From IMG/VR virus record IMGVR_UViG_3300035698_029839, positions 233,711-297,710 of that record: a DNA stretch of 64,000 nt. One strand, given 5' to 3'. Below are positions 5,676 through 24,076 of the stretch, piece by piece (the first letter of the stretch is position 1; each line of letters begins with the position of its first letter). The notes under the pieces are model-generated. The model worked only from the letters and a program-made list of their open reading frames with translations. It made no database searches and had not been told where the DNA came from. A program made the position numbers and the translations under genes.

Positions 5676-5897
5676 ATGAGTAAAGAAGAAAAACAAATAA
5701 GGATACCAACAGTTAAAGATATGCAACTTATTAATGATTACGCAGACGAACAAGATTTCTGGAAAAAAGATACTAAAGAAGAGGTGCTAGATTTATTTGT
5801 AGTCTTAGTAGGATATGGATTAGAACCACAAAAAGCAATTAATAATATAAATGGTATGATAACTGCTATGAAAAATGAATATAGAAAGGGAAAATAA
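5676..5897 (+). CDS. hypothetical protein
   Basis: AAGGA RBS. Confidence 0.6.
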   Translation: MSKEEKQIRIPTVKDMQLINDYADEQDFWKKDTKEEVLDLFVVLVGYGLEPQKAINNINGMITAMKNEYRKGK

Positions 5898-5899
5898 TT

Positions 5900-6379
5900 A
5901 TGTGCTTAAGTATATTATTAACAAAAAAAGAAAAAGATAAAATATTAAAAAATATATCGAGAAAAGGATTGACCGTTTATAAGGTTGTAGAAGTGTGTAA
6001 TAGGGAATATTATCCTATATATAGAGAACTCGATATAGAGAAATCACATTTTTCAGAAGGAAAAAATGTTGATATTCCTAGAGTTAAAAAGATAAGGACA
6101 GAAGATAAAATACCAACCTACTATAAGGCAGGATTCCACTTTTTCAAGAAATATAAAGATGCTCTAAAATCATTAAAATATTTAACTAATATTCATAAAA
6201 ATAAAAAATTTAAATTTATTGAATGTAAAATACATAAATCATGGATTATCGCTATGGGAATGAATTTCATAGAAATTACAGGAGGAGGAGAAGAATCATT
6301 TGGAGTTAGTATAGTAGCTAATAAAGCTATTTTCCCAGATAAGAATGTGGAAAATGAGAAGGACCAAAAATGTGCCTAA
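5900..6379 (+). CDS. hypothetical protein, paralog family 1
   Basis: shared motifs with 4493 and 6370. Confidence 0.8.
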   Translation: MCLSILLTKKEKDKILKNISRKGLTVYKVVEVCNREYYPIYRELDIEKSHFSEGKNVDIPRVKKIRTEDKIPTYYKAGFHFFKKYKDALKSLKYLTNIHKNKKFKFIECKIHKSWIIAMGMNFIEITGGGEESFGVSIVANKAIFPDKNVENEKDQKCA

Positions 6380-8660: not shown

Positions 8661-9365
8661 ATGGTAGAAATTATGTATAGGCCCTCAGATGTGGGTAAAG
8701 AGGTAAGGAATAGTCATGGAAAGATAATAAAAATAAGAAAATATCATTTAACAGAAAAGGAAAAAAAGATAGCACAAAACAAGTGGTCAAAAGTTACAGA
8801 TAATACGGACAAAAGGATAGTCAAGAGAGCAGGAGAGATCTTTTTCAATCCATTCCGCAAGGGAGTCTATTATTATCAGATATGTTCTTTATTTTTATTA
8901 GGAGCAAATAAGTGGCATAGTCTGAACTCTATCCTTAAAAAGATGGAGAAAATAATGTCAGAGGTAATAGTCAGAAAAGATGGAATTAGAATGACATCAT
9001 GGGAGAAATTCAGAGGTAAGTCTCAAAGAGTCCATGCTCTTCGCTGTAAGGATTATAAGGGAAGGGTACAGGAGAATATGGTTCTTCTTCAAAGATTGAC
9101 TAAATTCCATCCTTACGGATATAAGCTAAGACAAGTATGTAGTGCAATAGATATCATGAGAGTTACTAAGAGAGGATTTCCTAATGGTTGTTACTCTTAT
9201 AGGCTACATACTTATGATAATGAGAATCAAGCACTGCCTATGAGAGATTATAGTCAATTTGTTTTTCCTCGACATGAGAGAAAATATGTAAGTTACAAGT
9301 TTATAGGAACTGTTATAACAATGGACAAGGTTATAACTGAAGGGAAAGTAAATGAGATGTCATAA
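8661..9365 (+). CDS. basic protein, candidate DNA-binding regulator
   Basis: K/R-rich 234 aa ORF directly after the operator-like locus; function inferred only. Confidence 0.7.
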   Translation: MVEIMYRPSDVGKEVRNSHGKIIKIRKYHLTEKEKKIAQNKWSKVTDNTDKRIVKRAGEIFFNPFRKGVYYYQICSLFLLGANKWHSLNSILKKMEKIMSEVIVRKDGIRMTSWEKFRGKSQRVHALRCKDYKGRVQENMVLLQRLTKFHPYGYKLRQVCSAIDIMRVTKRGFPNGCYSYRLHTYDNENQALPMRDYSQFVFPRHERKYVSYKFIGTVITMDKVITEGKVNEMS

Positions 9366-12078: not shown

Positions 12079-12236
12079 ATTAGAAAAAAGTAAAGAGAAA
12101 AATGGAAACAATAGAAATGTTTAGAGAAATAGCGAAAGTTGATAAGATTCAGGAAAATCATAATGATTTTTATGAAATGGCTGAGAAGTATGGATTTTGT
12201 ACTCCTTGGAGTAATTGTGAAGAGGGTAATGAGTAT

Positions 12237-12274
12237 AGTTCTTTAAAAACGTAATGAATATAGTTCTTTAAAAA
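12237..12274 (+). promoter_or_regulatory. tandem boxA-like antitermination sites
   Basis: AGTTCTTTAAAAA twice; similar at 13263 and 16084. Confidence 0.55.
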
Positions 12275-12298
12275 GTAAATAGTATTATCACTTAAAAT

Positions 12299-12371
12299 TG
12301 TCCTTTAGTGTAATGGCTTAGCACGATTGCCTTTGACGCAATCAGTCGAAGTTCGAATCTTCGGAGGACAG
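12299..12371 (+). tRNA. tRNA-Gln(TTG)
   Basis: cloverleaf; ATTGC-CT TTG AC-GCAAT. Confidence 0.9.
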
Positions 12372-12468
12372 CTATGAATAGGATAATGTATAAAAATAAA
12401 AAAAGGAGTATTCCCCTATTATCAGAATATATATAATATAAAGTACATTTTAATAATAGGAGATTGTA

Positions 12469-13182
12469 ATGAAACAAAAAACAGGGCCTAAAAGGACTAG
12501 TATTATATGGCAGATGTCAAAAAAAGATTTTACAGAAAATGTGAAAAAAAGTTCTACTTTTAAAGAGATATTAAAATATTTTGGATTAGAAAATAAAGGT
12601 AGCAATTACAAAACATTAAAAAAAAGATTAGAGGAAGAAAATATAAATTATTCTCATATTCCTACAGGAGTAGGATGTAACAAAGGAATGAAAATAAATA
12701 GAAAAGCTATCTCATTAGAAAAAGTAATGATAGAAAATTCTACTTATTGCAGGGGGACTCTTAAAAAAAGATTATTAAAGAATGGTATGTTAGAAAATAA
12801 ATGTATGATCTGTGATCAACTACCTGAACATAATGGGATTAAATTAGTAATGGTTTTAGATCATATTAATGGAACTCCTAATGATCATAGATTAGAAAAT
12901 TTAAGATTACTTTGTCCTAATTGCAATAGCCAACAATCAACTTTTGCTGGAAAAAGGCATAAAAAACATTATTATTGTGAAAAATGTGGGAATAAAAGAA
13001 AAAATAAACAAAGTAAATATTGTTTTAGTTGTTCTGTTAAATTAAATGGGCAAAATAGAAGAAAAGTTAAAAATAGACCATCTAAAGAAAAATTATTAAA
13101 AGAAATAAAAGAAACTAATTATTGTGCTGTTGGTAGAAAATATGATGTAAGTGATAGTGCTATTAGAAAATGGTTGAAATGA
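12469..13182 (+). CDS. HNH homing endonuclease
   Basis: LDHING..DHRLENLRLLCPNCNS; paralog of 15078. Confidence 0.9.
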   Translation: MKQKTGPKRTSIIWQMSKKDFTENVKKSSTFKEILKYFGLENKGSNYKTLKKRLEEENINYSHIPTGVGCNKGMKINRKAISLEKVMIENSTYCRGTLKKRLLKNGMLENKCMICDQLPEHNGIKLVMVLDHINGTPNDHRLENLRLLCPNCNSQQSTFAGKRHKKHYYCEKCGNKRKNKQSKYCFSCSVKLNGQNRRKVKNRPSKEKLLKEIKETNYCAVGRKYDVSDSAIRKWLK

Positions 13183-13185
13183 TAT

Positions 13186-13259
13186 TCCCATGTAACTCAA
13201 TTAGGCAGAGTGGCACGCTGTTAACGTGTTGGTTGTAGGTTCGATTCCTACCGTGGGAG
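13186..13259 (+). tRNA. tRNA-Asn(GTT)
   Basis: cloverleaf. Confidence 0.9.
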
Positions 13260-13371
13260 TTCGATTCTTTGAAAAGTAAATAGGGGTTCCAAAAGGAACA
13301 CACATTGTGTTAAGTTTTAATTACTAACACATGGAGAGGTATAGCACTGAGTGGTATCTCTCCATGTTTTC

Positions 13372-13445
13372 TGACCTATAGCTTATGTGGGAAAAGCATT
13401 CGTCTTATAAGCGAAAGAGTCCAGGTTCGAATCCTGGTGGGTCAA
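13372..13445 (+). tRNA. tRNA-Ile(TAT)
   Basis: TTCGT-CT TAT AA-GCGAA. Confidence 0.85.
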
Positions 13446-13448
13446 TAT

Positions 13449-13521
13449 AGGCATAAAGCTCAGCAGGCAGAGCATCGTGCTGATATCACGAAGGCCGTTG
13501 GTTCGAATCCAGCTATGCCTA
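13449..13521 (+). tRNA. tRNA-Ile(GAT)
   Basis: cloverleaf. Confidence 0.9.
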
Positions 13522-13589
13522 TTAGAAAGAGGAATTCTTCTTTTTTTCCCGAAATAATATAGAATAAAGGACAAAAGGGAGAATTCATC

Positions 13590-13808
13590 ATGAAAGAAGT
13601 CTTGATAGAATTAGTAAAAAGGGTAAGTAGGAAAGCAGTTATATTAGCAATAGCTATGGTGTTGGTATATATGGTTATTATAACACCGAATGCCGTAAAT
13701 GCAGTGATAGCTATAGGGGTGATTTCTGGTTTATCAATAGTAGGAGCAGGACTTCAATTTTATTTAGATCTTAAAAAGATCAAAGATGACGAAACAGATA
13801 AAATTTAA
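13590..13808 (+). CDS. small two-TM membrane protein (holin-like topology)
   Basis: two TM helices, charged tail, AGGA-N17-GAAA promoter. Confidence 0.6.
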   Translation: MKEVLIELVKRVSRKAVILAIAMVLVYMVIITPNAVNAVIAIGVISGLSIVGAGLQFYLDLKKIKDDETDKI

Positions 13809-13947
13809 GCAGGTTGAATGTGAGTAAGTTATCGCTTATGGAGCCTGATGTGGATGGTTCGATTCCTCCTCTCTCGATTACAAATTGTTCGAGAGATAGC
13901 TTAACGGTAGAGCGCAGTAAAAACACTTATTCCTCCCACATATCTGC
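13809..13947 (+). ncRNA. Y-RNA(YrlA)-like RNA 1 with permuted tRNA module
   Basis: GCAGGTTGA..GTTATCG / CATATCTGC terminal stem; T arm, loop-closed acceptor TCTCTCGA/TCGAGAGA, then D arm. Confidence 0.75.
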
Positions 13948-13960
13948 TTTTTTAAACTTA

Positions 13961-14052
13961 GAAATATGGTGATAGGGCCTACAAAGCTTGGGTCAGCCAA
14001 CTACCCTAGGGACGCAAGTCATTGGTCTGGGGTCGAGTCCCAGTCATATTTC
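13961..14052 (+). ncRNA. non-canonical tRNA-like RNA
   Basis: 9-bp acceptor GAAATATGG/TCATATTTC, T arm CTGGG-GTCGAGT-CCCAG, atypical D and anticodon arms. Confidence 0.5.
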
Positions 14053-14060
14053 TCTTTTTT

Positions 14061-14134
14061 ACCCGCTTCGCTTAGTTGGCTAAAGCATCTGTCCTACAAA
14101 CAGAAGATCGTAGGTTCGAGTCCTATCGCGGGTA
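14061..14134 (+). tRNA. tRNA-Val(TAC)
   Basis: cloverleaf, C33. Confidence 0.85.
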
Positions 14135-14136
14135 TT

Positions 14137-14260
14137 ACACAGGTTGATCGCATGAAGGTTATCGGATAAAACATTTTTTCTTCAAACAAAAAATGCAAGT
14201 AGGGTTCAAACCCTTACAACCCAGAAATGGGAAAATTCTTCTGCACTAACATATCTGTGT
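14137..14260 (+). ncRNA. Y-RNA-like RNA 2
   Basis: ACACAGGTTGA..GTTATCG / CATATCTGTGT; T-arm-like hairpin and short closed stem. Confidence 0.7.
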
Positions 14261-14263
14261 TTT

Positions 14264-14334
14264 CCCCTATTGGTGTAATGGGAGCACGTGGCACTGTCGA
14301 TGCCAGGGCAGCAGATCGAAACTGCTATGGGGGG
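14264..14334 (+). tRNA. tRNA-Asp(GTC)
   Basis: cloverleaf, T loop ATCGAAA. Confidence 0.8.
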
Positions 14335-14339
14335 TTTTT

Positions 14340-14421
14340 GAGAGTATTGAGCAATTGGTGGCTTATCTGGCTGTAACCCAGATTCTGAAAAGACTTGTAG
14401 GTTCGAATCCTTCTGCTCTCA
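14340..14421 (+). tRNA. tRNA-Tyr(GTA)
   Basis: cloverleaf with variable arm. Confidence 0.85.
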
Positions 14422-14546
14422 TTTGGAGTTACTATGAATAAGAATTCTAGAAACTTATTTTAGTACTTTAGTCGTCTAAGGGCAAGGATACCTGTGCAAG
14501 CAGGAGATATGGTGTTCGAGTCGTCATCTAAATATTACTCCTAAAT

Positions 14547-14637
14547 GGTAAGTTGGCAGAGTCTGGCTTATTGCACTTGGTTGCTAACCAAGAGGGCCTT
14601 GAATAAGGTCCCATAGGTTCAAATCCTATACTTACCG
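14547..14637 (+). tRNA. tRNA-Ser(GCT)
   Basis: long variable arm, G73. Confidence 0.9.
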
Positions 14638-14719
14638 TTAGTGTGGAAAGCCGCACACGTAGTTACTTCCTTTTCGAAGGAGCAGACTAGGCTTGACGAA
14701 GGGGAAGAGACTCCTAACT

Positions 14720-14806
14720 GGATGAGCAAGCAGATTGGTGACTGCACTGGTTTTGAAAACCAACGAGCCTTTAAAAGCCTTGAGAGTTCGATTCCCTCCT
14801 CATCCG
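14720..14806 (+). tRNA. tRNA-Ser(TGA)
   Basis: long variable arm, G73. Confidence 0.85.
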
Positions 14807-14812
14807 CTTATT

Positions 14813-14885
14813 AGCGATATGGTGAAAATGGTAATCATAGATCCTTCATAAGGATCAGTTCCTGGTTCGATTCCAGATATCGCTA
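14813..14885 (+). tRNA. tRNA with CAT anticodon (elongator Met likely)
   Basis: GATCC-TT CAT AA-GGATC. Confidence 0.8.
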
Positions 14886-14893
14886 TTTATCAA

Positions 14894-14969
14894 CTGAACG
14901 TGGGGAAGTTTGGCCTAACCCGCCTGGTCTGGAGCCAGGAGAACGCTGGTTCAAATCCAGCCGTTCAGA
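14894..14969 (+). tRNA. tRNA-Pro(TGG) variant 1
   Basis: loop TC TGG AG. Confidence 0.8.
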
Positions 14970-15077
14970 TTTTGTAACACCGAATAGAAAATAAGCAGTC
15001 AAGACATATGTTTTATTAAAGGAATCCTGTCTTTTATGTCGAATATATAGATATAAGTTATTTAGATAGGAGATAAA

Positions 15078-15767
15078 ATGAGAAAAAGAACAAGTGTTGT
15101 GTGGAAGATATCAATAGAAGAATTAAAAAAGATAGTAAAAAAGAATGATAGTTTTGCAAAAATTTTAAAACATTTTGGGATGGCAATAGCAAGTGGAAAC
15201 TATAAAACATTAAAAAAAAGATTAAATTATGAAAATATAAGTTATTCTCATATATCTCAAGGGCTTAATAATAATAAAGGAAGAAAATTTCCAGAAAGAG
15301 CTATTCCCTTAAAAGAAGTAATGGTAAAAAACTCTACCTATTGTAGGGGAACTCTTAAAAAAAGATTATTAAAAAAGGGTTTATTAGAAAATAAATGTAA
15401 TATTTGTGGACAAATTTCTGAACATAATAATATTAAGTTAATAATGGTTTTAGATCATATAAATGGAGTTTCTAATGATCATCGCGTAGAGAATTTAAGA
15501 TTGCTTTGTCCTAATTGTAATAGCCAACAAAAAACATTTGCGGGAAGAAATTCTGTAAGAAAAAAATATAACTGTATTACTTGTGGTAAAAAAATTACAA
15601 AACATTCAAAATTGTGTAAAAGTTGCAGTGCTAGATTGCAAAAAAGAAAAGTTAAAAATAGACCTTCAGTAGAACAATTATTAAAAGAAATAAAAGAAAC
15701 TAATTATTGTGTTGTTGGTAGGAAATATGAAGTAAGTGATAATGCAGTAAGAAAATGGTTAAAATAA
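15078..15767 (+). CDS. HNH homing endonuclease
   Basis: LDHING..DHRVENLRLLCPNCNS. Confidence 0.9.
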   Translation: MRKRTSVVWKISIEELKKIVKKNDSFAKILKHFGMAIASGNYKTLKKRLNYENISYSHISQGLNNNKGRKFPERAIPLKEVMVKNSTYCRGTLKKRLLKKGLLENKCNICGQISEHNNIKLIMVLDHINGVSNDHRVENLRLLCPNCNSQQKTFAGRNSVRKKYNCITCGKKITKHSKLCKSCSARLQKRKVKNRPSVEQLLKEIKETNYCVVGRKYEVSDNAVRKWLK

Positions 15768-15769
15768 AA

Positions 15770-15841
15770 GGCCCATTCTTCTAGTGGCTAGGATATCAGG
15801 GTTTCATCCTGAAAACAGCGGTCCGACTCCGCTATGGGCTA
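15770..15841 (+). tRNA. tRNA-Glu(TTC)
   Basis: cloverleaf. Confidence 0.85.
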
Positions 15842-15890
15842 TTTAATCAAGGCAGAAACTGAGGGTTCGAGTCCCTTCCAGAGTATTCCT

Positions 15891-15962
15891 GCTCTTCTGG
15901 TGTAACGGTTAGCATCCGTGATTCTCAGTCACGAGATAGGGGTCCGACTCCCCTGAAGAGTA
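15891..15962 (+). tRNA. tRNA-Glu(CTC)
   Basis: cloverleaf. Confidence 0.85.
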
Positions 15963-16030
15963 TTTTTCCTCTTATAAGTCCTTGTCTTTTATGGATTTAA
16001 AAAAATATTAAAAAAATTGGAAAAAAGTTA

Positions 16031-16096
16031 TTGAAAAGTGAAAGAAAATCCGATATAGTAATATCATCATAACGAAAGTTATGACTTCTTTTACAA
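16031..16096 (+). promoter_or_regulatory. promoter plus boxB/boxA-like leader for the ncRNA operon
   Basis: TTGAAA-N17-TATAGT; TCATAAC-GAAA-GTTATGA hairpin then ACTTCTTTTACAA. Confidence 0.6.
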
Positions 16097-16115
16097 GTTA
16101 ATAGAGAGAAAAAAG

Positions 16116-16186
16116 AAACGGGTTGAAGTCTAAAAGTTATCGATCCTTGAAAATCAAACACACTTTTTGACACACCATATCCGTTT
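16116..16186 (+). ncRNA. Y-RNA-like RNA 3 (minimal)
   Basis: ACGGGTTGA..GTTATCG / CATATCCGT. Confidence 0.65.
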
Positions 16187-16201
16187 TTTCTAAAATATGC
16201 A

Positions 16202-16456
16202 TGTGGGTTGATTGATATTGGTTATCGATAATTACTGTGAAAAAGTGCAAGTAAGGATCAAAAAAGAGATTTAGGTAAAGTTAGATTGAGATCACGCCAA
16301 TCAATAAATCTAATGGGAAGACTGAAGATCTTTAAGAGAACCTAGGTTGAAACATACTAAAGGCTTTGTACTGTAAATTTCCCAAAACTTTGTTTAGTCC
16401 TTAGATATCCATGAGATATAAAAAAGGACATCTCCAATTTCTCCAACATATCCACA
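16202..16456 (+). ncRNA. Y-RNA-like RNA 4 with about 200-nt insert
   Basis: TGTGGGTTGA..GTTATCG / CATATCCACA. Confidence 0.65.
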
Positions 16457-16465
16457 GGCGTTTAT

Positions 16466-16537
16466 CTGAGGGTCGTCTAATCAGGATACCTCCTGTTAGG
16501 GGAGGAGATGTAGGTGTGACTCCTACTCCTTAGACCA
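16466..16537 (+). ncRNA. non-canonical tRNA-like RNA A, CCA-encoded
   Basis: cloverleaf, D loop lacks GG, T loop TGTGACT, anticodon loop TGTTAGG. Confidence 0.7.
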
Positions 16538-16540
16538 TTT

Positions 16541-16632
16541 TGCTCGGTAGTTTAAATATAAAACAGTTGCTCTGTTAATCATTTATGATTGCTTGCAACA
16601 GATGGTAGGAGTGATGCCTACCCTGAACACCA
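16541..16632 (+). ncRNA. non-canonical tRNA-like RNA B, extended anticodon arm, CCA-encoded
   Basis: GTTGC/GCAAC stem with distal hairpin; GGTAGG/CCTACC T stem. Confidence 0.65.
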
Positions 16633-16639
16633 AAATTAT

Positions 16640-16709
16640 ATTAGAGTAGTCTAATCAAGATACCCCCGTTGAGGGGGAGATGTAGGTGTGACTCCTACCT
16701 CTAATGCCA
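16640..16709 (+). ncRNA. non-canonical tRNA-like RNA C, paralog of A
   Basis: ATTAGAG/CTCTAAT-G-CCA; T arm identical to A; 5-nt anticodon loop. Confidence 0.7.
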
Positions 16710-16715
16710 ATATAT

Positions 16716-16895
16716 GTTAGGGTCTGCTCGAAAGAATTTATTCAGAGATGGGCTGTGAGCTATAAGTTTTGTTAAATGAGTTGGATGACTTGTTTAACGA
16801 AATGGGTTCGCAAAGTCAAAGAGGAAGTGTCTTACACATCCAAAGGTGAGCATGGATCAGAGACTTCGGAGGTTTGAATCCTCCCCCCAACACCA
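16716..16895 (+). ncRNA. 180-nt RNA with tRNA-like acceptor, T arm and CCA
   Basis: GTTAGGG/CCCCAAC-A-CCA, GGAGG-TTTGAAT-CCTCC, internal long hairpin. Confidence 0.6.
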
Positions 16896-16911
16896 ATTTT
16901 CATTTTTTTAC

Positions 16912-16998
16912 TGTTAGGTAGTTTAAGTAAAAAACAGTTATTAAGGCACACCCCTGTTTTGATAGCAGATGATAGGTGAGATACCTATCCCTTACACA
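16912..16998 (+). ncRNA. non-canonical tRNA-like RNA E, paralog of B
   Basis: 10-bp anticodon arm, GATAGG/CCTATC T stem. Confidence 0.6.
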
Positions 16999-17104
16999 TT
17001 GGGTAGCTTATGGGTAAAGTTGGTTATTGAGTCGATTAAAGGTTTATAGTGCTTTTAGTCAATGCCTTAATAACAGAAGGATGGGTCCGATTCCCTCCCC
17101 CGAT
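16998..17104 (+). ncRNA. non-canonical tRNA-like RNA F, very long anticodon arm
   Basis: ATTGGG/CCCGAT, D arm, GTTATTGAG/CTTAATAAC, T loop TCCGATT. Confidence 0.55.
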
Positions 17105-17135
17105 ATTTTTCTCTCTATCAGTTTAAAAAAATAAT

Positions 17136-17209
17136 TGCGGAGTAGAGCAGTCTGGCAGCTTGTCAGCCTCATAAGCTGAAGGTCGGAGGTTCAAATCCTT
17201 CCTCCGCTA
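17136..17209 (+). tRNA. tRNA-Met(CAT), initiator-like
   Basis: 1:72 mismatch, fMet-like D arm; lacks the three G-C anticodon-stem pairs. Confidence 0.8.
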
Positions 17210-17211
17210 TT

Positions 17212-17349
17212 GAAGTAAGTGGTTGTTGATATTCGTCAGATAAGGCAAATTCTAATTTTTCTCATGTCAAAAATAAGAGGCCTTTGTTATAATTCAAACA
17301 TGATTGGATTATGATGATTCGGAATATTGACTGGCCAGCCACTTACTTC
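17212..17349 (+). ncRNA. unknown rod-shaped RNA
   Basis: 14-bp terminal stem GAAGTAAGTGGTTG/CAGCCACTTACTTC plus inner stems. Confidence 0.5.
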
Positions 17350-17379
17350 TTCATTTTTCTTACACCGAATCATTATTTC

Positions 17380-17454
17380 CTGAACGTGGGAAAGCTTGGC
17401 CTAATCCGCGAGCTTTGGAAGCTCGAGACGCCAGTTCAAATCTGGCCGTTCTGA
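17380..17454 (+). tRNA. tRNA-Pro(TGG) variant 2
   Basis: loop TT TGG AA. Confidence 0.85.
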
Positions 17455-17457
17455 TAA

Positions 17458-17531
17458 CTCTCAGTGGGAAAGCTTGGTATTCCGTCTGGTTTGGGACCAG
17501 AAGATCAGAGGTTCGAATCCTCTCTGAGAGA
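17458..17531 (+). tRNA. tRNA-Pro(TGG) variant 3
   Basis: loop TT TGG GA. Confidence 0.85.
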
Positions 17532-17540
17532 TTAACCAAA

Positions 17541-17667
17541 GTGGGTTGATAGATAGTAGGTTATCGCTTATAACGAAGTGGTTGTGAGTTCGAGTCTCAC
17601 CGCGGAGGCAACTCTGTGTAGCTCAATGGCAGAGCACTAAAAATTCTATTGTCGCTAACACATCCAC
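17541..17667 (+). ncRNA. Y-RNA(YrlA)-like RNA 5 with permuted tRNA module
   Basis: T arm GTGAG-TTCGAGT-CTCAC, acceptor CGCGGAG-GCAA-CTCTGTG, D arm GCTC-AATGGCA-GAGC. Confidence 0.8.
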
Positions 17668-17700
17668 GGTTTTTTTAATAGTATAGCACTGAATAGTGTT

Positions 17701-17771
17701 GGGGGTATCGTCCAACGGGAAGACATCTGGTTTGCAACCAGAAAATAAGAGTTCGATTCTCTTTACCTCCA
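17701..17771 (+). tRNA. tRNA-Ala(TGC)
   Basis: G3:U70. Confidence 0.9.
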
Positions 17772-17778
17772 TTCTCTT

Positions 17779-17852
17779 GGGGACGCATGTGCCAAGGGTG
17801 GCGAGAGACCTTTGCAAGGTATCTGTGGTCAGTTCGATTCTGATCGTCTCCA
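17779..17852 (+). tRNA. tRNA-Ala(TGC), second copy
   Basis: G3:U70. Confidence 0.8.
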
Positions 17853-17854
17853 TT

Positions 17855-17963
17855 AAACAGGTTGATTGGTTAAAAGTTATCGATAAGTTCGACTCTTATT
17901 CTCCCCTTCTTTCATGGGGAGAAATGGCCTGGGGCCACCTTTTCTCCTACCACACATCTGTTT
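17855..17963 (+). ncRNA. Y-RNA-like RNA 6
   Basis: AAACAGGTTGA..GTTATCG / CACATCTGTTT; T arm then closed acceptor TCTCCCC/GGGGAGA. Confidence 0.7.
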
Positions 17964-18041
17964 TTTATAAAAAAAGGAAATTCTAAGTATATGTCGAAAT
18001 AGTAAGTAGTAAGCTATTTAACAATTACTTAGGATTTCAAT

Positions 18042-18449
18042 ATGAACTATAAGACAGGAAAATATGCAAAGAAAAAATGTATTGGATGTGGATTAAAAAC
18101 ATTAAACATAAAATTTTGTAGTAATAAATGCCAGCAATTATATTTTTGGGAAAAAAGAAAAAAAGAGATAAAAAAAACAGGAGAGATCCCAGAAAGAAGA
18201 GTTGGTATACGATATCTTAAAGAGGTCAGGGGAGATAAATGTGAGATATGTGATCTTAAAGAATGGAATGGAAAAGATATTACTATGATCATGGATCATA
18301 TCGATGGAGACTCATTAAATAATAAAGATCTAAATCTTAGATTGATTTGTCCTAACTGTGACTCTCAGTTATCAACCTATAAAAATAGGAATAAAGGTAA
18401 TGGTAGACATTCAAGAAGAGTAAGATATGCAGAAGGTAAAAGTTATTAA
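18042..18449 (+). CDS. HNH endonuclease
   Basis: MDHIDG..NN...NLRLICPNCDS. Confidence 0.85.
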   Translation: MNYKTGKYAKKKCIGCGLKTLNIKFCSNKCQQLYFWEKRKKEIKKTGEIPERRVGIRYLKEVRGDKCEICDLKEWNGKDITMIMDHIDGDSLNNKDLNLRLICPNCDSQLSTYKNRNKGNGRHSRRVRYAEGKSY

Positions 18450-18450
18450 T

Positions 18451-18523
18451 GCTGGTGTAGCTCAATTGGCAGAGCGCCTCATTTGTAATGAGGATGTTGT
18501 GGGTTCGACTCCTATCACCAGCT
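18451..18523 (+). tRNA. tRNA-Thr(TGT)
   Basis: cloverleaf. Confidence 0.9.
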
Positions 18524-18528
18524 TTAAA

Positions 18529-18600
18529 GGTGCGATAGCTGAGGCGGTTTAGCGCGAGACTGAAAATCTTGAGACGGAGGTTCGAGTCCTCTTCGTACCA
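18529..18600 (+). tRNA. tRNA-Phe(GAA)
   Basis: cloverleaf. Confidence 0.9.
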
Positions 18601-18614
18601 CTTTGTAGCACTGA

Positions 18615-18687
18615 GGGCCTGTAGCTCAATTGGCAGAGCGCCAAGCTCATAACTTGTGGATTGTAGGTTCGAGTCCTTCCTGGCCCA
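18615..18687 (+). tRNA. tRNA with CAT anticodon, probably Ile2 (lysidine)
   Basis: GGGCCTGTAGCTCA start typical of Ile2. Confidence 0.75.
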
Positions 18688-18749
18688 TTAATAATTTTTT
18701 TTAGGAGAAAGATCATGAAACGTAAGAAAGAAAAATCTGGTAAAATGTA

Positions 18750-18824
18750 GGGTGTGAAGCTTATTCTGGTAAAGCACGCGACTTTTAATCGCGAGTCTTG
18801 GGAGTTCGAATCTCCCTACACCCA
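18750..18824 (+). tRNA. tRNA-Lys(TTT)
   Basis: cloverleaf. Confidence 0.9.
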
Positions 18825-18829
18825 TTAGT

Positions 18830-18903
18830 GCCTTTGAAGCTTATTTGGCAAAGCACCTGGTTCTTACCCAGGAGTCTTGAGCGTTCGAATCGCTCCAGAG
18901 GCA
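18830..18903 (+). tRNA. tRNA-Lys(CTT)
   Basis: cloverleaf. Confidence 0.85.
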
Positions 18904-18909
18904 TTTCCT

Positions 18910-18982
18910 GTCAGAGGTGATGTAATTGGCAGCATATCAGACTGTGAATCTGAGTGAGCGAGTTCAAATCTCGTCCTTTGAC
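18910..18982 (+). tRNA. tRNA-His(GTG)
   Basis: G-1:C73. Confidence 0.9.
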
Positions 18983-19068
18983 CTTTTAAAAGGATTTGAA
19001 AATAAATAAAGGATTCAGATCCCTATTTTAGAATATAAGGTATAAACTATTTTTTTTGGAGAATAGAA

Positions 19069-19398
19069 ATGCCTTATAAAAATAAAGAAGATCAGTTAGA
19101 ATGTCAGAGAAGGTACTATCGTAATCATAGAAAAACTATGATCGAAAGAACCAATAAAAGAGCCAAAGAAATACGAAAATGGTGGAAAGAGTATAAAAAA
19201 ACACAAAAATGTGAAAAATGTGGAGAAAATCACCCAGCTTGTATTTGTTTTCATCATAGAGATCCAGAAGAAAAAGATATAGATCTATCCACTGCCGTTA
19301 CTCATAATCATTGGGGAGAAAAGAGAATAAAAAAAGAGTTATTAAAATGTGATGTTATTTGTTCTAATTGTCATCTTAAAATTCATTGGAATGATTAA
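19069..19398 (+). CDS. HNH endonuclease
   Basis: CxxC, FHHRDP, CDVICSNCH. Confidence 0.85.
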   Translation: MPYKNKEDQLECQRRYYRNHRKTMIERTNKRAKEIRKWWKEYKKTQKCEKCGENHPACICFHHRDPEEKDIDLSTAVTHNHWGEKRIKKELLKCDVICSNCHLKIHWND

Positions 19399-19404
19399 TT
19401 TTTC

Positions 19405-19475
19405 GCTCGGGTGGTCTAATGGAATGATGACAGATTGCAAATCTGTAGGCGAGAGTTCGATTCTCTCCCTGAGCT
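19405..19475 (+). tRNA. tRNA-Cys(GCA)
   Basis: U73. Confidence 0.9.
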
Positions 19476-19900
19476 TTTCCAGACAAGTGGTTTTTTATTA
19501 TTATTAAGTATAAATATTAATTTTTGGTAAAAAGGATTAAAAGATGGTAAAATATGTATTAACTGAAGAACAAGAAAAGAAGTTAAACGATGCAGATCTT
19601 GGACAATGGAAGAAACTAAATAATAAGGGTCAACAAGCTATTAAACAGAGAATGGCGATTGCTGACAGAATTGGACTAAAATTATCTGAAATAAAAAGAA
19701 TAGATTTATGAAGAAATCAGATGAAGACAGTTGTAGTGGTTTTAAAAGAGGATGGACTTCTGATCATGAAGAGTGCATAACATGTAAGAAGAATAGTCCT
19801 GCCAGATATAAAAAGTGCATGCAAGCAGTTAAAAAGTCGTTAAAAGAGAACTTTAGCACCGATGAAGAGATAGAGAAGTGGAAAAAAAAGAAAGTGAGAA

Positions 19901-20164
19901 ATGAAGATGAAAAGCTATAAATCGATACCTGTCGAAGTAGAAGCAATTCAATTTTTCGATACTAAAGAAAGTTTTGATGAAACTAAAGAGATTTTTGGAG
20001 AAAGATTATCTTCTAGTCTCCGAAATTTTCCTAGAGCTTTTTTTAGAGTAGAAAATGGGAAAACTGTCCCTTTATATAATAATTCATGGATCGTGAAAAA
20101 AGATAATAAATTAGAGATTTTGGATGATGAAACATTTAAAAAAACATATGAAGAGAAAGGGTAA
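19901..20164 (+). CDS. hypothetical phage protein
   Basis: YK..PVEVEAIQF...FKKTYE motif. Confidence 0.7.
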   Translation: MKMKSYKSIPVEVEAIQFFDTKESFDETKEIFGERLSSSLRNFPRAFFRVENGKTVPLYNNSWIVKKDNKLEILDDETFKKTYEEKG

Positions 20165-20556
20165 AAAATGGTATTTTTTAAAAGGTATAAAATAAATGGG
20201 ATGTTATTGTTTTGGAACATTTGGTTATGGGCTATTCTTTTCATAACAGGATGTAGCACTGTCAAAACTCCTCCTTGGAGTGAGAATGAAGTTTCAAGAA
20301 TGTCTGAAGTAGGACAAAATAAAACAGTTCCTATAGTTTTAATAAAGGTAGATTGATGGATATATCTAAAATATTTTGTTTTTTAGGACTTCATGACTGG
20401 TATTATGGAAATTTCCAGACAGGAGAGATGTCAAAATGGACAGGAGATCATGTTGGAGTTAGAGGAAGATCCTGTGTAAATTGTAATAAAAACCAAATAA
20501 AGAAAAAGAAGAAATATGTAACTGTTGATAGTTTTGAAAAACAATCAAATGAATAA

Positions 20557-20588
20557 GCGGGTGTGGTATAATGGCAAAATGCAAGGTT
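20557..20588 (+). pseudogene. 5' half of a tRNA (Gly-like), truncated at the anticodon loop
   Basis: GCGGGTG-TG-GTAT-AATGGCA-AAAT-G-CAAGG-TT ends at the HNH stop codon. Confidence 0.65.
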
Positions 20589-21250
20589 TATATATTTAAA
20601 AATCCATGATCTAAATCCCAGTGATGATTGGGACAAAGAAACATTAAATTTTTAATATCATTAACAACTTTTAATTTTGTGTTTTTGTTAAATTGATTAA
20701 TAGCTTTAATATGACACAAATCTAATTTGTTATTATATGAACAAAGTGGACATTTATTTGGTTTAAGATTATAAAATTTTGCTATTTGATGAGCATGATT
20801 TCTGATGGATTGATATTTGTGTCTTGCATAGGTAGATGTAAAATCTTTAATATATTTCTCTCCATATTGTTCTATTCTGTTAAGAGTAAGACATTTTTGA
20901 CAATAATGGGTTTTTGATTGAGTTAGATTTTGACATCTTAAACATTTTCTTTTAGGGCGTTTTGGAAAAAGACTATTATTTGTTTTTGCAGCACAGGATC
21001 TAGAACAGTATTTAGGGTTTTTAGTTTTTGTTCCACAAGTAAAACAATTAATTATAGGTCTATTAGGAGCTTTTATTTTTATTATTTCTCCAAAACATTC
21101 TTTTAAAGCATTATTCCATGATCCGAATCTTTTGCTTACAGTCCATTTATCAAAAGATCCATATTTATTATAATCATTTAATGATGGAATTTTTTTTATT
21201 TTAATTTTAACTCTTTTAAGGTCTTCTATAAGTTTATTAGTTGTTATCAT
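20588..21250 (-). CDS. HNH homing endonuclease
   Basis: KRFGSWNNAL homing-endonuclease-associated repeat, LCHIK..NLMFLCPNHH. Confidence 0.85.
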   Translation of the reverse strand: MITTNKLIEDLKRVKIKIKKIPSLNDYNKYGSFDKWTVSKRFGSWNNALKECFGEIIKIKAPNRPIINCFTCGTKTKNPKYCSRSCAAKTNNSLFPKRPKRKCLRCQNLTQSKTHYCQKCLTLNRIEQYGEKYIKDFTSTYARHKYQSIRNHAHQIAKFYNLKPNKCPLCSYNNKLDLCHIKAINQFNKNTKLKVVNDIKNLMFLCPNHHWDLDHGFLNI

Positions 21251-21273
21251 TATTACTCCTATAGTTTATTTAT

Positions 21274-21346
21274 GGGAATGAAACTCAATTGGACGAGTCT
21301 CACACTTCCACTGTGGGTGTTGCGAGTTCGAATCTCGTCATTCCCT
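21274..21346 (+). tRNA. tRNA-Gly(TCC)
   Basis: divergent cloverleaf, U73. Confidence 0.8.
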
Positions 21347-21438
21347 TTACTTATATTTCGGCATAAATGATTTGAATTCCTTTATTTTTATGGAAAAATA
21401 ATAAATTCATTTTCGAAAATGGATAAAATAAATTTAAT

Positions 21439-21510
21439 GCGAAATTGGTGTTAATGATAGCACATATGCTTGCCGAGCATAAGGTAAGAGTTTGAATCTC
21501 TTATTTCGCT
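21439..21510 (+). tRNA. tRNA-Gly(GCC)
   Basis: cloverleaf, U73. Confidence 0.85.
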
Positions 21511-21515
21511 TTCAA

Positions 21516-21588
21516 GCCCCTGTACCAGAATTGGCATATGGACTGCGTTTAGACCGCAGGGATGGAGGTTCGAGTCCTCTCGGGGGCA
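21516..21588 (+). tRNA. tRNA-Leu(TAG), short variable arm
   Basis: CTGCG-TT TAG AC-CGCAG. Confidence 0.8.
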
Positions 21589-21649
21589 TTATTTCCAGAC
21601 AAGTGGTTTTTTAATATTATATGATGTTAACTATGTAAAAGAGGTAATC

Positions 21650-22030
21650 ATGAAACGTGTACTAACAATGGATGATATTAGAAAAGGGATGTATGTTACT
21701 GTTCTTCAAGGTAAGATAGAGCAGAAAGTAATCCCTACTCTTAATGGTCCTAGAATCGTTGATAAAGAAAATGATTATTGGAACGGAAAAATTTTAGAAG
21801 TTACTGCTGTTGATATGCCTTATATTGTAGTTAAACTCCATACAAACATGAGTTGTTCTACATATTCTCTTGATGTTAGGATTGTCCAGTTTATGCTTCT
21901 TTCTCCAGAATATATTAAAGCTTGTTGTCCTGATATAAAGATTTCTAAAGATCTTTTTTGGAAGGATATTAAAGATGATTCTATAAAGAATGTTAATACT
22001 ACTATTGAAGAGATTTTTAAGGATCTCTAA
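21650..22030 (+). CDS. hypothetical protein
   Basis: repeat promoter, GAGG RBS. Confidence 0.75.
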   Translation: MKRVLTMDDIRKGMYVTVLQGKIEQKVIPTLNGPRIVDKENDYWNGKILEVTAVDMPYIVVKLHTNMSCSTYSLDVRIVQFMLLSPEYIKACCPDIKISKDLFWKDIKDDSIKNVNTTIEEIFKDL

Positions 22031-22209
22031 CACTGATTTTATGGATATAGAATTACAACAATTAAAAGATGAATTAAGCGTGGTCTCTATGAGATTAGTT
22101 TATGTAACTGAAGATATTTCTATTAAAATGGCTGAAGGGGACAAATTAAATCAAAGAAAAATTGATTTAGTTGAAAAAATAATGAAATTAGAAGATTAAC
22201 AAAGATAAA

Positions 22210-22283
22210 GCACCTGTAGTCTAATTGGAGAGGCACTGCGCTTCTAACGCAGATACATGCGGGTTCGAGTCCTGCCAGGTGTA
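22210..22283 (+). tRNA. tRNA-Arg(TCT)
   Basis: cloverleaf. Confidence 0.9.
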
Positions 22284-22288
22284 ATCAA

Positions 22289-22363
22289 GCTCCCGAAGCT
22301 TAAATGGATAAGCATCTCTCTCCTAAAGAGAAGTTTTTGTAGGTTCGAGTCCTATCGGGAGTA
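22289..22363 (+). tRNA. tRNA-Arg(CCT)
   Basis: cloverleaf. Confidence 0.85.
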
Positions 22364-22368
22364 TTAAA

Positions 22369-22441
22369 GCCCCTATAGTATAATCGAATAGAACATCGGC
22401 CTACGAAGCCGAAGATGGGAGTTTGAGTCTTCCTAGGGGCA
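22369..22441 (+). tRNA. tRNA-Arg(ACG)
   Basis: cloverleaf. Confidence 0.85.
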
Positions 22442-23074
22442 TTATATTAGTTTTTTAATAATGTTTTTTATATCATTAAAAGCTTGTTTTAGTATTTTGT
22501 CATTAGATACTAAATCTGGAATAACTATTAAGTTGATGTTTTTGTTAGTTGCTATTTTAGTTTTTTTAGAGTCTATGTTTTGTATTTTATTTAATTTAGT
22601 TTGACCATAGATAGGTTTGAAATGAACTATACCATTCCATTCAATAGCCAATTTAAGACTAGGGATAGCAACATCTGTTTCTAATCCATTTAACATAATT
22701 TTATCGTTAGCTAAAATAGTTAAATTAGGAAATTCTTTTACAAGTAAATTGTAAAATTTAGTTTCTATTTTAGATCTACGAGATTTCCTTTTTAATTTGT
22801 TATTATAAGTGGCAGCGCAAGATTTAGAACAAAAAGATTTACCTGATTTAGATTTTTTTATTTCTGATGGAAGAGTTGTTATTTTTTTATTACAAGATCC
22901 ACAAAAGGTTTTTACGAGGTTTATTTGTTTTTTATGATTATTAAAGCATTTTCTATTGCAAAAAGTGTGTTTATATCTATAACTATATTTTCTTATATTG
23001 CGAGTATGATCAGCTAAAATTCTTTCAAATAATTTTTTACAGTAGTAACATTTTAATTTAATAACTTTTCGCAT
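22442..23074 (-). CDS. Zn-finger plus PD-(D/E)xK-type putative homing endonuclease
   Basis: CxxC/FCxxxC repeats; ETDVAIPSLKLAIEWNG.VH. Confidence 0.8.
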   Translation of the reverse strand: MRKVIKLKCYYCKKLFERILADHTRNIRKYSYRYKHTFCNRKCFNNHKKQINLVKTFCGSCNKKITTLPSEIKKSKSGKSFCSKSCAATYNNKLKRKSRRSKIETKFYNLLVKEFPNLTILANDKIMLNGLETDVAIPSLKLAIEWNGIVHFKPIYGQTKLNKIQNIDSKKTKIATNKNINLIVIPDLVSNDKILKQAFNDIKNIIKKLI

Positions 23075-23173
23075 AGTTTATATCCTGAATTTATTTTTCT
23101 TATTATTTATATATTCTATTAAAAAATCTTAAATCCTTTTTATTTTTTTTCGAGTCCTGAGTGGGACGTTAAT

Positions 23174-23245
23174 AGGTCGGTGGTGTAATGGCTAGCATAT
23201 TGGTCTCCAAAACCGAAGATTAGGGTTCGACTCCCTACCTTCCTG
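23174..23245 (+). tRNA. tRNA-Trp(CCA)
   Basis: G73. Confidence 0.85.
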
Positions 23246-23371
23246 TTTATTCCAGACAACTGGTTTTTCGTAATGATAGAATAAGAGTAGTTAAAAGAGG
23301 TAGTTTGACATTTCTTTCACTTTTTTATTTTTCTCTTGAAAGTGAAAGGGTGCTGCCATATAATAGATGAT

Positions 23372-23512
23372 GAGCAGTGGTAGAAATTGGTATGGCTACA
23401 ATAACATTAGGTAGTTGTATATATCTAGTGGTTGTGTAAGCATTTATATTGTGAACCCCCTTTTTTAAGGTCAGCGGGTCCAAACCGAAACAGGTTTAAG
23501 CCCTGTCTGCTC
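23372..23512 (+). ncRNA. tRNA-like RNA with large central insertion
   Basis: GAGCAG/CTGCTC, Leu-like D loop, ACAGG/CCTGT T stem; own TTGAAA-N17-TATAAT promoter. Confidence 0.45.
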
Positions 23513-23681
23513 TTTATAAGTTAAATAAGAAATGAGATAGTAGTTTGGTAAGCTAAAAATTAATGACACGGCTGAGGCAGGGCGACCCCCTACTACGTAG
23601 AGATCGACACTTACTTAGATTTATTTTTACCAGAATAAATTGAAAAAGTTAGTTTTTATCTATCTTATTTCTTTTTTATAT

Positions 23682-23754
23682 GCCCAGGTAGGCCAACGGC
23701 AGAGTCAACGGTCTTAAAAGCCGTAAAGTGGAGGTTCAAATCCTCTCCTGGGCA
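23682..23754 (+). tRNA. tRNA-Leu(TAA), short variable arm
   Basis: cloverleaf. Confidence 0.85.
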
Positions 23755-23784
23755 TTACGGTTTTTTAAATGTAAGGAGTAAGAA

Positions 23785-23997
23785 ATGTTAGTATTGAGTA
23801 GACAAAAAAATGAATCGATTATGATTAATGATGGAGATAGACTTATAGAGATCTGTATCGTTGATGTGCGTGGTGATAAGGTTCGACTTGGAATAACGGC
23901 TCCAAAAGATATCCCTGTTCATAGAAAAGAAATTTATGAAGCGATTCAAAGAGAAAAAGAAGAAGAACAGAATAAGGATATTTCAGATCCTCTTTAA
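23785..23997 (+). CDS. csrA: carbon storage regulator CsrA
   Basis: [34 protein letters not shown]. Confidence 0.95.
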
Positions 23998-24003
23998 AGA
24001 TAA

Positions 24004-24076
24004 GCCCAGGTAGCCCAACGGCAGAGGCGGTAGACCCAAAATCTATTTAGTGAGAGTTCGAATCTCTCTCTGGGTA
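24004..24076 (+). tRNA. tRNA-Leu(CAA), short variable arm
   Basis: cloverleaf, C33. Confidence 0.8.

Follow-up and report, generated by a model that had tools for sequence, protein, structure and literature searches.

Probable non-decoding tRNA mimics and Y-like RNAs arrayed in the tRNA island of a Ro60-encoding huge phage

The DNA described here is the final 64 kb (64,000 nucleotides (nt); the window, to which coordinates refer unless the contig is named) of a viral record from IMG/VR, IMGVR_UViG_3300035698_029839. The contig is 297,710 base pairs (bp) long with 31% G+C, its CheckV completeness is 62%, and at least 16 salt-lake metagenome runs hold the same DNA. The window carries a tRNA island of 33 canonical tRNA genes at 12299-24076, which serve all 20 amino acids and are interspersed with open reading frames (ORFs) of HNH homing endonucleases. 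The largest stretch of the island that is free of ORFs and called tRNAs, 15964-17134, contains no ORF of 60 amino acids (aa) or more and no tRNA found by ARAGORN with default settings, at the Rfam gathering score or in sensitive mode. It holds a predicted operon of two Y-like RNAs, H and R, and six tRNA-like RNAs, A to F. The initial annotation had proposed six tandem cloverleaf-like RNAs here, and all six are found where it placed them or a few bases off. The operon comprises the following elements.

16031-16059, plus strand: putative sigma-70-type promoter from a pattern scan, TTGAAA-17 nt-TATAGT, with the conserved spacer AGYGAAAG
16067-16084, plus strand: leader hairpin capped by GAAA, read from the sequence; absent in the related locus L007
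16085-16109, plus strand: conserved leader block, TTTKACAAGTWAATAGAGAGA in relatives, rrn boxA-like in appearance; with the hairpin it may form a boxB/boxA-type antitermination leader
16118-16190, plus strand: Y-like RNA H, about 70 nt, a terminal frame only (5' ACGGGUUGAAG..AAGUUAUCGA ... CAUAUCCGU and a U run), with no tRNA module
16198-16460, plus strand: Y-like RNA R, about 260 nt, a terminal frame (GUGGGUUGAUUGA..GGUUAUCGA ... CAUAUCCAC) enclosing a large structured insert
16466-16537, plus strand: tRNA-like RNA A (A-type); 7-bp acceptor with G3.U70, A73 and CCA; 4-bp D stem; loop UGUUAGG; T loop UGUGACU
16541-16632, plus strand: tRNA-like RNA B (B-type); D arm GUUU/AAAC without GG; replaced anticodon arm of 33 nt; 6-bp T stem; T loop AGUGAUG; ACCA end
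16640-16709, plus strand: tRNA-like RNA C (A-type, paralog of A); perfect 7-bp acceptor, G73 and CCA; CCCCC/GGGGG stem with a 5-nt loop
16716-16895, plus strand: tRNA-like RNA D; acceptor GUUAGGG/CCCCAAC (A.C at 4:69), A73 and CCA; near-canonical T arm with loop UUUGAAU; from a helix scan and fold
16912-16997, plus strand: tRNA-like RNA E (B-type, paralog of B); same GUUU/AAAC D arm; C-rich loop and long arm; T loop UGAGAUA; no CCA; abuts F
16998-17104, plus strand: tRNA-like RNA F; canonical D loop (GG) and T loop UCCGAUU; no CCA

The six tRNA-like RNAs keep the acceptor/T-arm helix and the overall cloverleaf, and their decoding features are lost. The A-type has four helices with a 7/5 acceptor/T branch; in the B-type the T stem is 6 bp long. 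A and C each have a 4-bp D stem and share an identical T arm, GUAGG-UGUGACU-CCUAC, ending in ACCA and GCCA, respectively. The 7-nt loop of A at the anticodon position lacks U33 and has G at 33. In D a structured insert of about 110 nt replaces the D and anticodon region; the D ortholog in L007 has the same ends and a compensated T stem. The acceptor of E contains a U.U mismatch, and E has orthologs in L012 and L013. The anticodon arm of F is lengthened to about 22 bp and carries a conserved apical UAUAGUG. The canonical elbow, formed by G18G19 in the D loop and T-Psi-C in the T loop, is missing from A, B, C and E and is present in F. The unusual features first described by the initial annotation are thus borne out: T loops other than TTCGA (TGTGACT in A and C, AGTGATG in B, TGAGATA in E), D loops without GG in most of the RNAs (A, B, C and E; that of F is canonical), and anticodon arms that are shortened, extended or replaced (the 5-nt loop of C, the long arms of B and E, the insert of D and the 22-bp arm of F). 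A simple scan for acceptor-plus-T-arm helices was discarded as evidence, as its 18 hits against 6.8 +/- 3.9 in shuffles (maximum 21) do not discriminate. No transfer-messenger RNA (tmRNA) is called in the region by ARAGORN with default settings, and at 80% thresholds there is one spurious permuted call only.

At least nine related phages from metagenomes (L007, L008, L012, L013, L015, L017, L035, L038 and L059) have the same operon, likewise placed between tRNA-Glu(CUC) and tRNA-Met. About ten loci have a common tRNA order, which runs Gln, Asn, Ile, Val, Asp, Tyr, Ser, Ser, Met, Glu, Glu up to the gap that holds the operon, and continues with Met, Pro, Pro, Ala, Thr, Phe and so on. In the tenth locus, L009, the gap holds only the promoter, the H element and an ORF, and one A-like copy is found further downstream. 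The flanking proteins of the relatives are 42-72% identical to those of the window, and at the DNA level the promoter and the H-to-R stretch are 70-88% identical. These relatives were found through homologs of two flanking proteins, which are common in metagenomes, and then by a scan with a RecA-like ATPase profile; a search with a single 557-aa protein returned nothing. There is no close cultured phage: when the region was compared by blastn with 50,697 phage genomes, the tRNA-Met alone was matched. An exact 20-mer of the A-type T arm had no hits in IMG/VR. Matches to 'Acinetobacter phage MD-2021a' were set aside as bacterial DNA.

By itself the match of the promoter to the consensus is at chance level for AT-rich DNA (13 sites against 12.4 expected). 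The promoter block is conserved in ten related loci: it is identical in L007 and reads TTGAMA with TATAGT or TATAAT in L008, L009, L012, L013, L015, L017, L035, L038 and L059. This conservation supports the earlier proposal that the array has a promoter of its own. The earlier readings as a dedicated operon and as Y-like RNAs are upheld too, and the Ro60 gene of the phage, described below, adds weight to both. The conserved apical loop of F, UAUAGUG (17040-17055), matches the -10 hexamer TATAGT of the operon (16054-16059), which may be a coincidence.

Alignment of the orthologs and paralogs reveals extensive covariation. In the A-type (13 short copies aligned) 96% of the cells are paired and 15 of 21 pairs have changed on both sides. 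In the B-type (9 copies) the corresponding values are 93.9% and 11 of 22, the sixth T-stem pair being among those changed. Eleven of 34 pairs are compensatory in the F-type alignment of four copies (with L008, L012 and L015), and they are spread along the long arm. All four cloverleaf helices contain compensatory changes. None of 500 shuffles reached the observed pairing and covariation, and sliding the 3' partners lowered the pairing to 41-55%. No convincing tertiary covariation between the D loop and the T loop was seen in the A-type. The paralog pairs A/C and B/E, singled out by the initial annotation, do keep their pairing despite substitutions on both strands. DNA contigs from four of the salt-lake runs contain no usable compensatory micro-variation.

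A covariance model of the A-type gives its members 60-86 bits, B-types 25-42 bits and canonical tRNAs at most 37 bits; with model R1 of the A-type, A scores 81.5, C 80.5 and B 41.6 bits. Run over the whole contig, the A-type model picks up A-type copies in this operon and nowhere else. Neither A to F nor R nor the G-type RNA of the relatives has a matching Rfam family. The Rfam tRNA model (RF00005; gathering score 29 bits) gives 35 bits to one A-type ortholog, in L012, and 24 bits to the F ortholog of the same locus.

The structure-preserving homologs and the covariation that had been proposed as a check were therefore both found. Together with the synteny at 42-72% protein identity and the retained CCA discussed below, the compensatory changes indicate that the RNAs are selected tRNA mimics rather than decayed genes, as had been suggested. 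A to F are very probably selected, non-decoding tRNA mimics in an operon with Y RNAs.

That they are instead decaying tRNA pseudogenes or odd decoding tRNAs, A being a suppressor of UAA and F a tRNA with an intron, is hardly credible. With relaxed settings ARAGORN does call A 'tRNA-Stop(tta)' (at 90% thresholds) and F 'Ser(gct) with a 22-nt intron', and the one A-type ortholog scores as a tRNA with Rfam. The compensatory substitutions and the synteny, however, extend over the clade, A has no U33 and the loops of its orthologs are 4-5 nt long, and the supposed intron of F is a continuous, conserved and covarying helix. The 33 canonical tRNAs already serve all amino acids. The standard genetic code fits the genome and no recoded stop codon stood out as a sign of another code; the idea of A as a suppressor under an alternative code was rejected on this ground.

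The 'anticodon' arm is the least conserved part of the mimics. Its loops have 4, 5 or 7 nt, among them UUCG and GNRA tetraloops, and there are long insertions and unrelated sequences; a 7-nt loop with U33 is not conserved across the orthologs. Such variable arms rule out ordinary decoding, and since neither the length nor the sequence of the loop is conserved, imitation of a specific anticodon loop is ruled out as well. The earlier suggestion that the RNAs are decoys for anticodon nucleases is not supported, because orthologous loops differ in both respects and mimic no specific anticodon.

The opposite end of the molecule is well preserved. A, B, C and D end in RCCA, and none of the 33 canonical tRNAs in the window has CCA after the discriminator; the observation that four of the RNAs encode CCA and the canonical tRNAs do not is thus correct. 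Across the clade CCA is encoded in 23 of 28 copies (14 of 17 of the A-type, 7 of 9 of the B-type and both of the D-type) and in none of the four F-type copies. When canonical tRNAs of the related loci were checked more crudely, 19 of 250 were flagged for CCA, and the two flagged in the window do not truly encode it. RNase Z and the CCA-adding enzyme recognise tRNA via the elbow. F, with its canonical elbow, lacks CCA in all four copies, which suggests that CCA is encoded where these two enzymes would not recognise the RNA. As the encoded CCA coincides with the missing canonical elbow, a CCA 3' end would appear to be functionally required.

One use for such an end would be aminoacylation. The mimics could, as the initial annotation also suggested, be charged and serve as aminoacyl donors outside the ribosome, for cell wall, lipid, peptide or protein tagging, while the missing anticodon and the altered T arm would exclude them from translation. 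The conserved CCA is in keeping with this, as is G3.U70 with A73 in A and in its counterparts in L015 and L017, since G3.U70 is the main determinant of alanyl-tRNA synthetase. A further non-decoding tRNA-like RNA lies at 17779-17855, directly 3' of the tRNA-Ala gene. It has canonical D and T loops and no encoded CCA, its anticodon stem is capped by the 3-nt loop UGC, and it gives a weak Rfam tmRNA hit (21.8 bits). It possesses the full alanine acceptor set (G1-C72, G2-C71, G3.U70 and A73), a point in favour of charging. The acceptor identity of the orthologs of the mimics, however, varies: pair 1:72 is A-U, C-G or G-C, pair 3:70 is U-A, G.U or U.G, and the discriminator is A or G. Most synthetases, moreover, need the anticodon. 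We consider a role as aminoacyl donors distinctly unlikely.

Production of the RNAs can be pictured from the layout of the operon. One strong promoter would give rise to a polycistronic precursor. RNase P would cleave the 5' end of each acceptor, as it does in tRNA precursors (U is at position -1 before five of the six elements), and exonucleases would trim the 3' ends to the encoded CCA. The expected products are two RNAs of the Y-RNA family and six stable tRNA-derived RNAs. The spacers of 3-17 nt, the U at -1 and the flanking of other noncoding RNAs within one operon would also suit elements that serve only as punctuation or stabilisers, i.e. tRNA-shaped RNase P sites that free and protect the adjoining Y-like RNAs or, in the relatives, the G-type RNA. 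Several of the tRNA-like RNAs, however, follow each other directly with nothing between them to release, the distinct types are each conserved, and the retained type-specific D and T loops and encoded CCA are unnecessary for punctuation, which makes this role very unlikely.

The two RNAs at the head of the operon belong to a family that has further members in the island. Its common frame is 5' NNNGGUUGA..AAGUUAUCG ... CAYAUCNNN and a U run, and its three outer pairs covary over 55 instances (A-U/G-C, C-G/U-A and G-C/A-U). Scored with three position-weight matrices, the window yields six frame RNAs and no more.

13809-13947: frame RNA with the full YrlA layout
14139-14258: frame RNA
16118-16184: H
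16203-16455: R
17541-17667: frame RNA with the full YrlA layout
17857-17961: frame RNA

H and R carry the three frame blocks and the covarying terminal helix of the YrlA-like RNAs of the clade. As they are the third and fourth of the six RNAs defined by the matrices, their earlier designation as 'Y-like' is right in substance. All three motifs of H are the top scores in the window, and H is duplicated in L038 and L059. An alignment of R from seven phages has 52 predicted pairs, 18 of them compensatory. R has no match in Rfam; RNase P RNA, GOLLD/ROOL, 6S RNA and riboswitches were considered and rejected for want of Rfam support, and the P4-like motifs matched by eye clash with the covarying helices. 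The four frame RNAs outside the operon sit among the canonical tRNAs. Small ORF calls that overlap frame RNAs, e.g. 13814-13972, are probably spurious. When a loose form of the frame pattern was run across IMG/VR the matches were mostly due to chance, and among the loci returned full frames were found only in the large related record G001.

YrlA-type Y RNAs are partners of Ro60/Rsr, Thermus phage phiLo encodes Yrl1/2, and the YrlA RNA of M. smegmatis is cut by RNase P and has CCA added (PMC4201824, PMC12135203). Such RNAs have been identified by an end-pairing stem with the motif GNCGAAN0-1G near the 5' end and by their location, within about 4 kb of Ro60 on the same strand (PMC4201824). The full YrlA layout of a T arm, a closed acceptor-like hairpin and a D arm is present in 13809-13947, 17541-17667 and 13 RNAs of the relatives, and 17 of 24 pairs are compensatory in the alignment of these 15 members. 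The Rfam YrlA model (RF02553) gives 37.2 bits (E 1e-5) to 17546-17664 and 32.6 bits to an RNA of L013, significant hits that are nevertheless below the gathering score of 69 bits. A hit of the same model inside the operon (16.3 bits, E 3.7) spans the T arm of E and the D arm of F. It was dismissed as a tandem-tRNA artefact of the type that Chen et al. caution against (PMC4201824). Neither H nor R nor any of A to F contains the permuted YrlA-type module.

The locus thus resembles the YrlA system in having tRNA mimicry in a Ro60-encoding genome, RNAs in the window with the complete YrlA layout including the terminal stem, and a terminal frame, CGA(A/U) motif included, that H and R share with those RNAs. 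Compared with GNCGAAN0-1G, the conserved GUUAUCGA(U/A) block of H and R has the CGA core, lacks the first G and is variable at the fifth base. The locus differs from YrlA in several respects. A to F have normal tRNA topology with an open acceptor and a closed 'anticodon' arm, whereas YrlA is permuted; A, B, C and E have no canonical elbow, which YrlA keeps; some 53 kb separate the operon from Ro60, against about 4 kb at most for YrlA; and all scores are under the Rfam gathering score.

The Ro60 ortholog of this phage has 575 aa and is encoded at contig 195013-196740 (L089:1432-3159), with TROVE and vWA_Ro60 matches of 107 and 207 bits. The gene is about 53 kb upstream of the operon, which starts at contig 249741, and on the same strand. 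Both large relatives, G001 and G002, likewise have a Ro60 gene, which lies about as far from the tRNA island as it does here; the two records measure 351 kb and 548 kb. No Y RNA was found beside the Ro60 gene. A CCA-adding-type enzyme of 817 aa is encoded at contig 146147-148600 (L090:886-3339); it has a PolyA_pol head, RNA-binding and HD domains and long extensions at both ends. RtcB was not found. Since Y RNAs are here arrayed among tRNAs, away from Ro60, searches confined to the Ro60 neighbourhood will miss RNAs of this kind.

The mimics may be seen as parts or clients of a phage Ro60/Y-RNA particle. In such a particle they would supply, as separate molecules, the tRNA-like module that bacterial YrlA contains in cis. 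Their role could be to bring in tRNA-binding enzymes or exoribonucleases, or to insert their ACCA tails into the ring of Ro60. Predicted co-transcription with two Y-frame RNAs, the presence of Ro60 in all three large records, the full YrlA-like RNAs in the same island and the lack of a Y RNA adjacent to Ro60 itself all favour this. The insert of D also contains a sequence, ACACAUCC, that resembles the Y-frame 3' block; the likeness is weak (score 11.7) and within the range expected by chance. The long arms of D and F were likewise rejected as Y-frame-like, their motif scores being within that range. Against membership in the particle, the A- and B-types lack the canonical elbow that YrlA modules keep, the tRNA-like RNAs of L035 occur without a Y-frame RNA in the operon, and G002 has Ro60 and Y-like RNAs and almost no tRNA-like RNAs. 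On balance this is an unlikely function.

The account that we prefer is that an operon for stable RNAs, located in the tRNA island of this Ro60-encoding huge phage, produces tRNA mimics which act through their acceptor end; as a whole it is held tentatively, at somewhat less than even confidence. Proteins that recognise the 3'-CCA end or the acceptor helix of tRNA during infection would find in the mimics an abundant ligand that competes as a substrate or acts as a decoy, and the mimics themselves would stay outside translation. Candidate targets are host toxins or nucleases directed at the acceptor end, or the RNA-surveillance set of the phage, namely Ro60 and the CCA-adding/HD enzyme. The ligand or decoy mechanism taken alone is possible rather than probable. 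A number of points weigh against this account. The sequences show the anatomy, its conservation and covariation, the retained CCA, the non-decoding arms and the setting with Ro60 and Y RNAs, whereas transcription, processing, abundance and the binding partner are inferred. Enzymatic toxins turn over, so that a decoy would need to be very abundant. The types differ in acceptor stem, discriminator and T loop, each separately conserved, which hints at several specific partners and not at a single generic target that binds CCA. E and F have no CCA, so the CCA end is not the whole story. Finally, G001 has only B- and F-types and G002 almost none, yet both have Ro60, and a strict link with Ro60 is therefore unsupported.

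A broader interpretation is that in this clade the bacterial Y-RNA design has been taken apart and an RNA toolkit assembled around the phages' own Ro60, with the mimics as a new class of viral effector RNA. The toolkit would comprise Y-frame RNAs with and without tRNA modules and free CCA-ended mimics of at least three structural classes with a non-canonical elbow. This interpretation is doubtful. If it is correct, the mimics might be charged and used off the ribosome, or might blunt host immunity that attacks the acceptor ends of tRNA.

The array was compared with YrlA-type Y RNAs (PMC4201824, PMC12135203), T4 RNAC and RNAD, tmRNA, pseudo-tRNAs and tRNAs of non-canonical geometry. The RNAs are of a known kind, tRNA-derived mimics, and their arrangement as a Y-RNA array inside a phage tRNA island is unreported; it connects phage tRNA islands with Ro60 and Y RNAs. 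The A-, B-, D- and F-type RNAs, R and the G-type RNA are classes that match no Rfam family.

Phage tRNA genes are mainly regarded as aids to codon usage or as substitutes for tRNAs that host defences have cleaved. A to F fit neither, as their structure is selected and decoding is impossible. In T4 the genes of RNAC and RNAD are located in the tRNA cluster, and the RNAs described here resemble them in being small and encoded alongside phage tRNA genes. The two sets have no sequence similarity (blastn against 50,697 phage records), and T4 has no Ro60. RNAC and RNAD (species 1 and 2) are small stable RNAs of unknown function (PMC9697503). The present array adds to this old puzzle of stable RNAs in phage tRNA clusters, and offers a viral tRNA-mimic set that is experimentally tractable, since the RNAs are small, their ends are defined and ten or more natural variants exist.

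A CCA-bearing acceptor/T-arm helix, the lack of an anticodon and a degenerate D region are common to the mimics and the tRNA-like domain of tmRNA, whose alanine identity set is also present in the RNA at 17779-17855. The mimics differ in having no mRNA-like reading frame and no pseudoknots, and G3.U70 is missing from most of A to F. A tmRNA gene is present elsewhere on the contig, at 177330-177679, with the tag DTSYAKAA (ARAGORN). The staphylococcal cell-wall tRNA-Gly and tRNA-Other of Bacillus cereus have altered T and D loops and stay outside normal translation. Such non-proteinogenic or pseudo-tRNAs keep a normal anticodon stem-loop, whereas here the loop is replaced. No cognate transferase was identified for the mimics, though no search of the contig for Fem-type, L/F-type or MprF-type transferases was made. 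The B-type, with a 6-bp T stem and a 6- or 7-bp acceptor, resembles the 8/4 and 9/3 tRNAs in its shifted acceptor-branch split, but has no anticodon; the 8/4 and 9/3 tRNAs decode with theirs (Mukai et al. 2017, PMC5389517).

In the relatives the operon ends in a conserved RNA of about 200 nt with a closing stem, which matches nothing in Rfam and does not occur in the window. It is found at L007:7621-7845, L012:~5990-6180, L015:~12140-12340, L035:~9160-9360 and L059:~16195-16385, and contains the blocks GTAGTGGCTGAATAATCTTG, AGATAAGGTT, GCAGTGAATAT and TGACCTAGTTYTGTCTA. A tRNA-like sequence of 32 bits is inserted within the operon of L012 on the minus strand (5783-5855). In the salt-lake runs X2, X3, X6 and X10 an identical operon (15960-17140) occurs together with contig fragments of related phages that have other combinations of modules. 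Joints that skip whole elements in the lake contigs look like related strains, not deletions.

The ORFs of the homing-endonuclease type in the island are listed here.

12469-13182: HNH
15078-15767: HNH
20588-21250, minus strand: HNH
22442-23074, minus strand: zinc-finger (zf-FCS) match only

Their positions vary among the relatives, which explains the variable spacing in the island. A CsrA homolog (82 bits; 23785-23997) lies between the final two tRNA-Leu genes of the island, as it does in the relatives L003, L004 and L005. Further downstream, at 30873-32207, a PARP-like protein with WGR, regulatory and catalytic domains is encoded, and it is conserved in the relatives.

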